From Dendrobates tinctorius (lineage: Eukaryota): a DNA stretch of 64,000 nucleotides. The notes below the pieces were generated by a model that did no database searches, was not told where the DNA came from, and was given only the letters and a program-made list of their open reading frames with translations. Position numbers and translations under genes: made by a program. Of this stretch, positions 16,861 to 48,394 are shown piece by piece. The stretch is taken from contig NW_027361684.1 of assembly GCF_039654945.1 (NCBI RefSeq), forward strand, positions 39,556,001 to 39,620,000. Direction: 5' to 3'. The stretch's first letter is position 1. Each line of letters begins with the position of its first letter.

Positions 16861-17987
16861 CAGCTGCATTTAAATGGATCACACGCACCCTGGGACCCCC
16901 ACCGTAATTGTGGGGTACCAAATGGGTTGCCATGGCAGTCGGGGTCTACTCACGGTGGGATTCTTGGTATTCCTGTAAAGCGCAGCCACGCGCTTCATAG
17001 GAGACATCAATTTCCACAACATATTGCAGTACTGTGGTACTGTAGCATATAGTATAAGCGATCGGATGATCACAGGCCCAAACGGCACGGGGATTAGAAA
17101 ATAACATCTTATCTACCCCCCCAATCGATATCAGAGAAAATGGAAGCTCAGGGGAGAGAAAACAGGCATCACAAGGCTCCACTGAGGAAAATATGAAACA
17201 TTAGGGGTCTTGGAGATGGCTGCATAAACCTATGTTGGCGCTATTGGAATAAATTATTATTAATTTTTATTTTTTTTCACCCCACAAAAAAAACCTATGC
17301 ATGTTTGACACCTCTGTAATCCGAATGACCTGGAGACACTGCTGGGTTATTTTTTCCAATGAAAGTGGTCAAAATAAAACCCAAAAATCAACGGCAGAAT
17401 TGCATTCTTTTTTTTTGCAATGGCACCTGGAATTATCTCCCATTTTCCAGTACATTGTACGGTACAAAGAAAGGTTTCATTCAAAACTACAAATTTTCCC
17501 ACAAAAAGAGAAAGCCCTCATACATCTATACGTCGATGCCGAAATAAAAAAAAAAAAGTAAACAATCGATGGCTCTTGGAAGGAAAGGAAAAAACAAAAG
17601 CGTAGAAGTAAAATGCTGTCGTGGAGGGGTTAAAAAGCACATGTACAAAAATGGGGCAGATCATGAAGGAAATGACCATGGGGGCTGGAACTGAACTGGT
17701 TAAATAAAAGTGATTGAGATTTAAAAAAAAAAAAAAAGAGCCCTCACCTATTAGTCAGTGAACACATAGCAGCGCCCCCCACACTGAGCCCCGGCAGCTC
17801 GGGCGCCCTCTGCTGGGTATGTGCACTGGGGCCCGTAGGTCAGACATGCTGACGGTTTCCCTCCCATGGGGCACAGCACACAGGAGAAGTTGCACTGACT
17901 GAGGGGGCGTGTTGCCCGGCGTGCCTCACATGCGGACCACACCACTCACTAACTGGAAAGTAACCACCATTATCGGTCCTAACGTAC

Positions 17988-18072
17988 CTCGGGCTACAGG
18001 GCCGTCGTTGGCTGCAAGCTGCTCCCGTAATTCGGAGGCAGAAATCCTCACCCTCTCTAACGTCGCCGCCAT
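17988..18072 (-). CDS. smg6: SMG6 coding exon 1
   Basis: aagATGG start; MAATLERVRISASELREQLAANDGPVAR; G|gtacgt donor, phase 1 matches exon 2. Confidence 0.92.
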
Positions 18073-18311
18073 CTTCCCAGCGACCGCCAGGAATCAAAAC
18101 AAGACCCGAAGAGTACAACAACGGCGAGCGAGCAGGGCCAAGCCAGAGCTGGCTTCCGCTGTACGGAACGATCAGCAGACGTCACTGTACGGACTGTCAA
18201 ACAGGCGTCAACCCGGCGGCCATCATGCTGTACGGAAAGCGTCAAAGGTCGCTAGAAAATGGCATGCGCAGTTGTTGCTGCTCGGTGCATTAGTTCTACT
18301 GCAGTTGTGAG
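18060..18311. promoter_or_regulatory. Bidirectional CpG-rich promoter shared by smg6 and srr
   Basis: Head-to-head genes; YY1 motif (aagatggcggc, - strand, 18065-18075) overlapping smg6 ATG; CRE-like gacgtca ~18178; ETS-like cttccg; NRF1-like gcatgcgca 18262-18270. Confidence 0.7.
18259..18311 (+). CDS. srr: Putative srr exon 1 with in-frame ATG (N-terminal extension MACAVVAARCISSTAVVR); may instead be 5' UTR
   Basis: aaaATGG, 53 nt to gag|gtgaga donor; splicing to tag|G ATG at 19777 is in frame. Confidence 0.5.
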
Positions 18312-18544
18312 GTGAGACTGTAGAGTTGTGGACACGTTATATTGTACTGTGCCATTGTTTTTTAGGCAATATAGAGTTTCTTCTGACTAGTTTACTTTCT
18401 ATACATAAGTATATGTGCAGCAGGGTGACAACCAATATGGCTGCATCTCAGCTCTACACTGGTTGTCACATAATGTTGTCAGATTTTATAATAGTAAATG
18501 CACTTAGTTGTGCAGCCGTACACCGCTGGCTAACCGGACATTGT

Positions 18545-19143
18545 AGCGCTGGATGGGGTTGCGCCGTTGCAGAGCGCTGGAGGGGGTTTGCGCCGTTGCA
18601 GAGCGCTGGAGGGGGGTTTGCGCCGGGGCAGAGCGCTGGAGGGGGGTTTGCGCCGGGGCAGAGCGCTGGAGGGGGGTTTGCGCCGGGGCAGAGCGCTGGA
18701 GGGGGGTTTGCGCCGGGGCAGGGCGCTGGAGGGGGGTTTGCGCCGGGGCAGGGCGCTGGAGGGGGGTTTGCGCCGGGGCAGGGCGCTGGAGGGGGGTTTG
18801 CGCCGGGGCAGAGCGCTGGAGGGGGGTTTGCGCCGGGGCAGAGCGCTGGAGGGGGGTTTGCGCCGGGGCAGGGCGCTGGAGGGGGGTTTGCGCCGGGGCA
18901 GGGCGCTGGAGGGGGGTTTGCGCCGGGGCAGGGCGCTGGAGGGGGGTTTGCGCCGGGGCAGGGCGCTGGAGGGGGGTTTGCGCCGGGGCAGGGCGCTAGA
19001 GGGGGGTTTGCGCCGGGGCAGGGCGCTAGAGGGGGGTTTGCGCCGGGCGCTAGAGGGGGGGTTGCGCCGTTGCAGAGCGCTGGAGGGGGTTTGCGCCGGG
19101 GCAGAGCGCTGGAGGGGGGGTTGCGCCGTTGCAGAGCGCTGGA
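18545..19143. repeat. 30-bp G-rich minisatellite, ~19 copies
   Basis: gcgccggggcagagcgctggaggggggttt repeated; produces spurious repetitive ORFs. Confidence 0.95.
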
Positions 19144-19777
19144 GTTGGTTGGCCGACCTGATGCTGGTGGGATCCATATTGGTTATATAAGTGTCGTCAG
19201 TAATTAGTGACTTTGGACATGACGCAGGCGACACTGCCAGAATTCCAAACTTCATGTCATTGTTACTCTGCAGGCTGCAGCACAATATATGTGATTAGGG
19301 GGGCTTTGCCACTTCTACACACAAGTTGCAAAAACAAAAAAGTAACTGGGTTGGATTTTTGTGACTTGCTTGTGACAGTGATGTAATATATGGAAGACAC
19401 AAAATACATGAAAGGAACGTTCAGTGCAACGTGAAGCGACTTTTATTATTAGTGCCTGTGCATAAGTCTGGAAGGAGCTCCACCAAAAATGCAGAGTAAC
19501 ATACTTCAGTTGCTGATTAGGTTCATCATCCCATCATGCCAACACGCGTTTTGCCCTGCTTCATCTTTGAGCCTCTGCACGGTGCAGATTTATTGCAGTT
19601 TTCCATGTTTTTTGGTTTGTTTTTCCGTTTGTATATCAGGAGGATAATTCACCCCATATTACCATATATTATTTGACATCACTGTGGCTTTTATTACTTG
19701 TGTAAGGCTATTAGATGGCCATTGCATAACAGTTTTACTGCAGAGATTTACAGTGACATTTTATTTTCTCTTTTAGG

Positions 19778-19948
19778 ATGATGACTCCCTCATATTGTGT
19801 GACATTAAAAGATGTGCAAGAAGCTCAGAGAAGGATCCAAGGCTTTGTCCATTCTACCCCAGTAATGACATGTTCCAGTCTGGATGCACTCGCTGCACGC
19901 AAGTTATTCTTTAAATGTGAATTACTGCAGAAGACAGGCTCTTTCAAG
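19778..19948 (+). CDS. srr: Serine racemase coding exon
   Basis: MMTPSYCVTLKDVQEAQRRIQGFVHSTPVMT...FKCELLQKTGSFK|gtaatc. Confidence 0.95.
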
Positions 19949-25109: not shown

Positions 25110-25224
25110 ATTCGGGGGGCAATAAATGCTGTTAAGAGTTTACGGTCAGATAAATGTACTGCGGTTGTGACTCACAGCAGTGGTAACCATGGACAGGCAT
25201 TGGCTTTGGCAGCGCAAATTATGG
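25110..25224 (+). CDS. srr: Serine racemase coding exon
   Basis: ttcag|IRGAINAVKSL...THSSGNHGQALALAAQIMG|gtagtt. Confidence 0.95.
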
Positions 25225-25451: not shown

Positions 25452-25555
25452 GCATTCCTGCTTATGTAGTAGTGCCAAGCACAGCTGCAGCATGCAAGAA
25501 ATCTGCAATTCTTGGATATGGTGCTTTGGTTGTGGACTGTGAACCAACAGATGAG
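25452..25555 (+). CDS. srr: Serine racemase coding exon
   Basis: ctag|IPAYVVVPSTAAACKKSAILGYGA...EPTDE|gtaact. Confidence 0.95.
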
Positions 25556-25743: not shown

Positions 25744-25863
25744 TCTCGAGCAGAAGTGGCAGCTAATACAGTACAGAAGACTGGGGGTGTTTTAATCCAT
25801 CCAAATCAGGATCCTGCTGTCATTGCGGGGCAAGGGACCATTGGATTCGAAATTGTACAACAG
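25744..25863 (+). CDS. srr: Serine racemase coding exon
   Basis: aag|SRAEVAA...HPNQDPAVIAGQGTIGFEIVQQ|gtaata. Confidence 0.95.
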
Positions 25864-25941: not shown

Positions 25942-26016
25942 GTGCCAGGACTGGAGGCCTTGGTCATACCCGTGGGTGGTGGTGGCATGCTGGCTGGAAT
26001 AGCTGTTGCCGTTAAG
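25942..26016 (+). CDS. srr: Serine racemase coding exon
   Basis: cag|VPGLEALVIPVGGGGMLAGIAVAVK|gtgaga. Confidence 0.95.
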
Positions 26017-40640: not shown

Positions 40641-40850
40641 GCAATTAAGCCAAATGTAAAAATCTACGCGGCAGAACCTCTTAATGCCGACGACTGCTAC
40701 CGCTCAAAGACAAGTGGTATTTTGACTGCTAATCTTCAGCCTCCAATCACAATAGCTGATGGTGTGAAAACAAGCATTGGACCCAACACCTGGCCTATCA
40801 TACGGGACCTCGTGGATGAGGTGTTTGTGGTCACTGAAGATGAAATCAAG
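40641..40850 (+). CDS. srr: Serine racemase coding exon
   Basis: aacag|AIKPNVKIYAAEPLNADDCY...TIADGVKTSIG...EDEIK|gtaaca. Confidence 0.95.
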
Positions 40851-48196: not shown

Positions 48197-48394
48197 AATG
48201 CTACTCTGTTAATTTGGGAGAGGATGAAGCTTCTGATCGAGCCGACGGCCGGCCTGGGTCTGGCTGCCGTTCTCTCCAGCAGATTCCAGGAGAAGACAGG
48301 AGGTGCACAAAACATTGGTGTGGTGCTGTGCGGAGGCAACGTAGACCTCAGCAGCATTGACTGGATAAGAGAGTCTTCACCAAGCAGCAGCTGA
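48197..48394 (+). CDS. srr: Serine racemase last coding exon
   Basis: cgcag|NATLLIWERMKLLIEPTAG...VVLCGGNVDLSSIDWIRESSPSSS*. Confidence 0.95.
   Translation, partial: NATLLIWERMKLLIEPTAGLGLAAVLSSRFQEKTGGAQNIGVVLCGGNVDLSSIDWIRESSPSSS

Follow-up and report, generated by a model that had tools for sequence, protein, structure and literature searches.

The gene for serine racemase (SRR) in a 64,000-nucleotide stretch of the genome of Dendrobates tinctorius (contig NW_027361684.1, positions 39,556,001 to 39,620,000, forward strand; hereafter the window, whose own coordinates are used throughout) raises the question whether a small upstream exon, read in frame with the conserved enzyme, equips SRR with a mitochondrial presequence. 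SRR makes D-serine, a co-agonist of the N-methyl-D-aspartate (NMDA) receptor, and is considered a cytosolic or membrane-associated enzyme; we know of no description of a dual-localised SRR in any vertebrate. A mitochondrial form would, if true, alter the compartmentalisation of serine and D-serine metabolism, but the evidence presented here points the opposite way. The structural half of the original prediction, an in-frame ATG in a strong context within a spliced mRNA, is borne out, whereas its mitochondrial half, processing of the extension by two successive peptidases, is not, as the peptide lacks amphipathicity and a conserved cleavage motif, and substitutions within it resemble those of neutral DNA. 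The 18-residue extension is probably a lineage-specific N-terminal appendage, near-neutral, or a by-product of the architecture of the 5′ leader, and not a mitochondrial presequence.

The whole SRR gene model was rebuilt from open segments and GT-AG sites. The coding end of exon 1 on the forward strand comprises 53 nucleotides (nt) at 18259..18311, corresponding to seventeen codons and two bases. It opens with an ATG at 18259-18261 in the favourable Kozak context gaaaATGg (A at −3, G at +4) and ends at 18311, where a gtgaga donor follows. An in-frame TAG on the same strand (18253..18255) lies two codons upstream, which makes 18259 the first and only possible start of a long form. Intron 1 (18312..19776) closes with the acceptor ttttag (AG at 19775-19776), and exon 2 (19777..19948) opens with G ATG ATG ACT at 19777. 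Joining 18311 to 19777, the predicted splice, yields MACAVVAARCISSTAVVR in frame with MMTPSYC; the translation runs through MACAVVAARCISSTAVV and an Arg codon split by the junction (AG before it, G after it; Arg18) into the exon 2 peptide MMTPSYCVTLKDVQEAQ..., and no stop codon intervenes between the AUG at 18259 and the main SRR open reading frame (ORF). The strong-context ATG, the 53 nt leading to the GTGAGA donor and the in-frame fusion to MMTPSYC, as originally proposed, can thus be read directly in the DNA. Exon 1, exon 2 and six further GT-AG exons together encode 348 residues, or 330 residues when counted from the first ATG of exon 2.

Two ATG codons, at 19778 and 19781, are candidates for the canonical start in exon 2. 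The doubled start ATGATG (MM) is found in dendrobatids and in Pyxicephalus (window 19778-19783; locus L001, 5264; locus L009, 10001), and other frogs have ACC ATG or a similar sequence. Because the dendrobatid start is doubled, it is the second Met (ATG 19781), residue 20 of the long form and aligned with the start Met of other frogs, that represents the canonical Met common to them. The window protein contains the serine racemase hallmarks GSFKIRGA, HSSGNHG and GGGG, the PLP-lysine and glycine-loop motifs included, belongs to PF00291 and the pyridoxal phosphate (PLP) fold type II, shows 74-88% identity to annotated frog SRRs and 96% identity to the SRR of Ranitomeya imitator, and is encoded within the kept gene order SMG6-SRR-TSR1. 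With canonical vertebrate SRR it has in common the PALP fold, the same motifs, the head-to-head arrangement with SMG6, the tail-to-tail arrangement with TSR1 and, for the canonical form, a coding start in exon 2. Unlike the long form, however, canonical vertebrate SRR has a non-coding exon 1, and its start Met corresponds to long-form residue 20.

Evidence for the use of exon 1 was obtained from Logan contigs of four runs, which were aligned to 17400-18544 only, away from the tandem array at 18545-19144. Such contigs carry no information on strand, transcription start site (TSS), depth or abundance, and the acceptor side of exon 2 is seen solely via 30 loose-end contig letters, not by direct alignment. 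In run X1 (organism A, the species of the window, 0 mismatches) a 407-nt contig covers 18193-18312, beyond which its next 30 letters match 19778-19807 exactly; as these letters continue into exon 2, they display the junction between 18311 and 19777 directly. The same exon 1-exon 2 junction is present in a contig of run X16 (organism D, about 6% diverged), and the donor that had been predicted is therefore in use in both organisms. The smallest extent of exon 1 in a transcript-type contig is 18193..18311 (+; X1 record 3, reaching 18312 before exon 2; X22 record 14 is continuous over 17988-18312). The 18259 ATG is therefore preceded by at least 66 nt of transcript-contig sequence, in agreement with the proposal that transcripts extend upstream of it.

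In X1 the contig of the neighbouring SMG6 gene ends at 18140, and an uncovered interval (18141-18192) parts it from the SRR contig, so that the 5′ part of the latter is most simply taken as SRR sense transcript. Run X22 contains one unbroken contig over 17988-18312, from the SMG6 exon 1 donor to the SRR exon 1 donor; a contig that is unbroken across both first exons implies that the 5′ ends of the divergent SMG6 and SRR transcripts overlap or abut. The human SMG6/SRR pair is annotated with the same 5′ overlap or abutment. In X16, too, one continuous contig spans the first exons of SMG6 and SRR. In organism D no differences are found over 18241-18297, and the ATG is consequently kept; three nucleotides are deleted directly ahead of the donor (…SS-G-VVR), which leaves the frame intact. 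Dendrobatids probably produce some of the long form, to judge from its strong-context AUG, ahead of which lies one moderately good out-of-frame AUG. The arrangement resembles that of N-terminally extended proteoforms derived from in-frame upstream AUGs, with an AUG in a 5′ exon, no intervening stop, a good Kozak context and available downstream AUGs, but differs in that the use of both starts is here only predicted and a function of the extension hypothetical.

For comparison with annotated proteins, a word search with the exon 2 peptide gave, within its length limit, six non-frog fragments with 55-69% identity. Exon 7 was used as query in a representative set to obtain a full-length SRR, with which two word searches were made. 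The closest protein is the NCBI entry 'serine racemase [Ranitomeya imitator]' (P0276; locus L001), which has 348 residues, starts with MACAVVAARRVSSTGVVRMM (longer stretch: MACAVVAARRVSSTGVVRMMTPSYC) and is identical to the window SRR at 333 of 348 positions (15 differences). The 348-residue ORF is thus already a public model in the sister genus Ranitomeya. The two genes have the same upstream ATG, 53-nt coding end of exon 1, donor, 187-nt distance to the SMG6 ATG and protein length; they differ at three of the 18 extension residues (C10R, I11V and A15G), changes that destroy the R-10 processing motif discussed below.

Extended SRRs are also annotated in Eleutherodactylus coqui (MTCAVAAARCTAARALLGGYKAGTTLRCVT), in Engystomops pustulosus (MRRRFACRIGARVLRT) and, as isoform X2 with 53 extra residues, in Pseudophryne. 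Annotated proteins of 322-330 residues that begin at the canonical Met are found in Leptodactylus, Dendropsophus, Bufo, Hyla (X2), Rhinoderma (X2), Hyperolius, Pyxicephalus, Spea, Pelobates, Xenopus and others. For Hyla sarda and Rhinoderma this comparison of annotated starts covers isoform X2, and the loci of Pseudophryne X2 and Rhinoderma X2 lie outside the locus comparison described below.

Nine frog loci were compared, and exon 1 was aligned for eight frogs. At the codon homologous to 18259, the window, Ranitomeya and E. coqui carry ATG; Leptodactylus, Engystomops, Dendropsophus and Bufo carry GTG there. Exon 1 of Leptodactylus, Dendropsophus and Hyperolius does not contain any in-frame ATG. 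Conservation of ATG and frame, named as a check in the original prediction, therefore extends to Ranitomeya, organism D and E. coqui, but not to the species with GTG. Even the extended proteins are not built alike. The E. coqui extension (GDO78_008744; P0278/P0211) derives from the homologous exon 1 and the homologous ATG and starts with MTCAVAAARC, but the homologous donor lacks its GT; a donor 36 nt (12 codons) downstream is used instead, and the protein is longer by 30 residues. The Engystomops extension (GDO81_006661; P0279) is likewise encoded by the homologous exon 1, but starts 5 nt downstream of the GTG, within CATGCGCA, in another frame, and a 1-nt indel restores the phase.

The properties of the peptide itself bear directly on the proposed targeting function. 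According to the original prediction, the mitochondrial processing peptidase (MPP) would cut after R-C and the mitochondrial intermediate peptidase (MIP) would trim the octapeptide in R-C↓I-S-S-T-A-V-V-R↓, releasing a protein that begins at the canonical Met, and SRR would be a matrix protein or dual-localised via alternative starts. The composition of the peptide is compatible with this scheme, as it contains two Arg and no Asp or Glu, is rich in Ala, Ser and Val and carries a net positive charge, and its ATG lies in a strong context within an mRNA. In addition, the register of R-10 presequences (MPP cleavage followed by octapeptide removal by MIP/Oct1), R-X↓(F/L/I)-X-X-(S/T/G)-X-X-X-X↓, is matched exactly in the window, with R at −10, I at −8 and T at −5 (R-X↓I-X-X-T-X-X-X-X↓), a fit attained by 0.15% of shuffles of the same composition. 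Thus, the register is as claimed, but it is confined to the window species: in Ranitomeya position −8 is V, organism D has A at −10 as a result of its one-codon deletion, and the fit is absent from the E. coqui, Engystomops and Pseudophryne extensions.

Other properties of the peptide are at odds with those of R-10 presequences, despite the common motif and the common lack of acidic residues. The part ahead of the proposed MPP site is very short, just 10 residues with a single Arg. The Eisenberg hydrophobic moment, a crude measure and not a trained predictor, is 0.04 over the 18-mer, and the best 11-residue window reaches 0.37 versus a shuffle mean of 0.43, with 66% of the shuffles scoring at least equal; an amphipathic helix is not indicated by the hydrophobic moment relative to the peptide's own shuffles. 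All three frames of the CpG-rich leader give basic, acid-poor peptides, which makes the composition largely a property of the DNA and weak evidence of targeting. With two basic residues, a moment below the shuffle mean and a motif that is absent in the two nearest relatives, the likeness to a presequence is no greater than expected by chance. None of the papers searched reports a mitochondrial or N-terminally extended form of SRR, and a review (PMC4000995) places the mammalian enzyme in the cytosol or in association with the Golgi or with membranes. Together with the absence of the ATG from Leptodactylus, Dendropsophus, Bufo and Hyperolius and the different start and frame in Engystomops, these observations make a matrix presequence highly improbable. 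For comparison, the N-terminal extensions of two non-frog SRR-like proteins from public assemblies (P0004 and P0025) look far more presequence-like, with MLRRILRPAAVRQLT... and MIPRAMVKGLRARSGRKGF..., respectively.

The substitutions that separate the window from Ranitomeya argue in the same direction. Within the extension 4 of 53 nt differ (7.5%), three of them non-synonymous and one synonymous, a rate like that of the non-coding DNA between the SRR and SMG6 ATGs, where 17 of 183 nt differ (9.3%). In exon 2, 6 of 172 nt differ (3.5%), all of them synonymous changes at third positions. At the protein level, three differences fall among the 18 extension residues and 12 among the remaining 330 (Fisher p=0.036, with small numbers). 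The extension thus resembles, in its mode of evolution, the surrounding non-coding DNA and not the SRR coding sequence, and a targeting function appears to be lacking.

Three points weigh against this view of the extension. First, presequences evolve fast and without a consensus, so that a neutral-like pattern across 18 residues argues only weakly for the absence of a function. Second, the annotated extensions of the window, Ranitomeya, E. coqui, Engystomops and Pseudophryne X2 are all free of Asp and Glu and net positive, which is a composition like that of targeting peptides. Third, the contigs cannot reveal where transcripts start, nor what share of them includes the 18259 AUG. Because acid-free basic extensions recur in four frog lineages, mitochondrial import, weak or species-specific, retains a small residual probability: it is very unlikely, though conceivable, that a fraction of SRR is imported into mitochondria in dendrobatids, Eleutherodactylus, Engystomops (MRRRFACRIGARVLRT) and Pseudophryne (MSLLRPSLATVAGRSG...), if the extensions are used. 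If true, this would amount to a dual-localised serine racemase/dehydratase that was gained and lost repeatedly via small changes in a promoter-proximal exon.

The conservation that does exist around the upstream ATG is best understood from the position of exon 1. SMG6 is encoded on the reverse strand and faces SRR head to head; the coding part of its exon 1 spans 17988..18072, starting with MAATLERVRISASELR at ATG 18072-18070 (SMG6 mRNA contigs end at the donor at 17988), and 187 nt separate the SMG6 ATG from the upstream ATG of SRR. In eight of nine other frog loci SRR has SMG6, with an EST1 and mostly also a PIN_4 domain, as its upstream neighbour in the same head-to-head orientation, and the distance to the annotated start of the SRR coding sequence ranges from 0.2 to about 9 kb; in the locus of Dendropsophus (L005) no upstream gene is called within the locus. 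TSR1 is found downstream of SRR in all nine frog loci. The observed/expected CpG ratio over 17950-18330 is 0.99. The two genes are thus arranged head to head less than 1 kb apart in the window, in a conserved order, as is characteristic of a bidirectional promoter.

Several short motifs in this region are kept irrespective of the reading frame. A block GCCGCCAT(C/G)ATGCTGTACGGA (in fuller form GCCGCCAT(C/G)ATGCTGTACGGAA(A/G)G) and the motif GACATGCGCAGT are kept among hyloids whatever the frame, and GCATGCGCAG (18262..18271, +), which occupies codons 2-5 of the extension and is a candidate NRF1-like half site, is kept in all hyloids examined, with or without an in-frame ATG. The GCCGCCATG..TGTACGGA part has recognisable versions also in Xenopus tropicalis and Pyxicephalus. 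Three of the five matches to TGTACGGA in the 64-kb window cluster within the 77 bp of 18160-18236 (+), versus 0.87 expected for the whole window, and are likely promoter elements that are conserved in other frogs. Copies of TGTACGGA also recur just downstream of the SMG6 ATG in L001-L004, L008 and L009, including X. tropicalis and Pyxicephalus. We take GCATGCGCA to resemble an NRF1 half site, GCCGCCAT a YY1 core and ACGGAA an ETS-like core, as candidate assignments. NRF1, YY1 and ETS-type motifs are typical of bidirectional promoters. The block that is conserved throughout the frogs is, judged by its sequence, promoter-like DNA of the SMG6-SRR promoter and not bound to a reading frame; the region is conserved because promoter motifs are kept regardless of frame.

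A different explanation, in which the peptide is irrelevant, is that the leader exerts translational control: an out-of-frame upstream open reading frame (uORF) of 22 codons (18225..18293, +; context gccatcATGc), together with the in-frame ATG, would capture scanning ribosomes and tune the synthesis of canonical SRR. The uORF starts 34 nt upstream of 18259 and overlaps the ATG located there. E. coqui, Engystomops and Leptodactylus have a uORF of the type M(M)LYG[KR]x[QH]RxL, closed by a stop codon and starting in a near-perfect gccgccATGa context; a related uORF is found in Dendropsophus, Hyperolius and X. tropicalis (MLLYGLISEC, then a stop). However, its conserved letters coincide with TGTACGGA, present in three copies, and with the GCCGCCAT block, and the conservation may therefore be transcriptional and not translational; in organism D, moreover, an A>G change at 18225 turns the uORF ATG into GTG. 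Translational control of this kind is accordingly possible but rather unlikely.

The MLYG-type element could be a conserved uORF, or it could simply consist of the GCCGCCAT and TGTACGGA DNA motifs. As MLYG overlaps a TGTACGGA copy, the third of the three in the window (CTG TAC GGA, encoding LYG), the DNA motif is the simpler reading. Selection on the MLYG uORF peptide was set aside, as the peptide coincides with one of the three TGTACGGA copies. The MLYG-type sites are located at 18218-18258 in the window, 3954-4004 in L002, 3964-3999 in L003, 8057-8092 in L004, 20-55 in L005 and about 2860-2895 in L008. In E. coqui the TGA that closes the uORF and the start codon of the annotated extension overlap as ATGA. 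In the SRR-like isoform X2 of Pseudophryne corroboree (P0281), the 53-residue extension includes MMLYGKYNRSL, which elsewhere is a separate uORF and here is in frame with SRR.

The dendrobatid and E. coqui extensions have M[AT]CAV[VA]AARC in common, which might point to another role at the protein level, such as membrane anchoring via acylation of Cys3 and Cys10, or an effect on N-terminal stability or partner binding. In mammalian SRR the N-terminal 66 residues bind Golga3 and control SRR degradation, and membrane targeting by acylation is known (PMC4000995). The common residues are, however, encoded by a block of DNA that species lacking the ATG have conserved too, Cys10 is replaced by Arg in Ranitomeya, and no recognised acylation motif was found, although no dedicated test was made. 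A role of this kind is improbable. The reading of MACAVVAARC as a signal peptide or acylation site was considered as well and found no support.

The favoured explanation, a near-neutral appendage or by-product of the leader, can be put as follows. SRR exon 1 sits in a CpG-rich bidirectional promoter common to SMG6 and SRR, and an A/G point difference beside the conserved GCATGCGCAG, ATG versus the GTG of other hyloids, gives rise to an upstream AUG in dendrobatids and Eleutherodactylus. By chance, this AUG is in phase with the SRR coding sequence, and transcripts starting upstream of 18259 can therefore give a 348-residue SRR besides the canonical 330-residue protein. The amount of the long form would be set by the choice of TSS, by leaky scanning and by the overlapping out-of-frame uORF.

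The locus illustrates how an in-frame AUG beside conserved promoter motifs allows N-terminal extensions to be created, shifted and lost between related species, and how such AUGs come to define "the" protein in annotation pipelines. For annotation, the 348-residue model of dendrobatid SRR should be taken to represent a possible long proteoform and not to indicate a new localisation.

The remaining coding exons of SRR, all on the forward strand and delineated from open segments and splice sites, are exons 3-6 at 25110-25224, 25452-25555, 25744-25863 and 25942-26016, exon 7 at 40641..40850 and the last coding exon, stop codon included, at 48197..48394. Intron 1 differs from the homologous intron of R. 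imitator, in which no 30-bp minisatellite is present, by a tandem array at 18545-19144. This minisatellite consists of 20 copies of a 30-bp unit (AGCGCTGGAGGGGGGTTTGCGCCGGGGCAG) with 94% matches, and is G-rich on the sense strand, with a GC content of up to 0.78.

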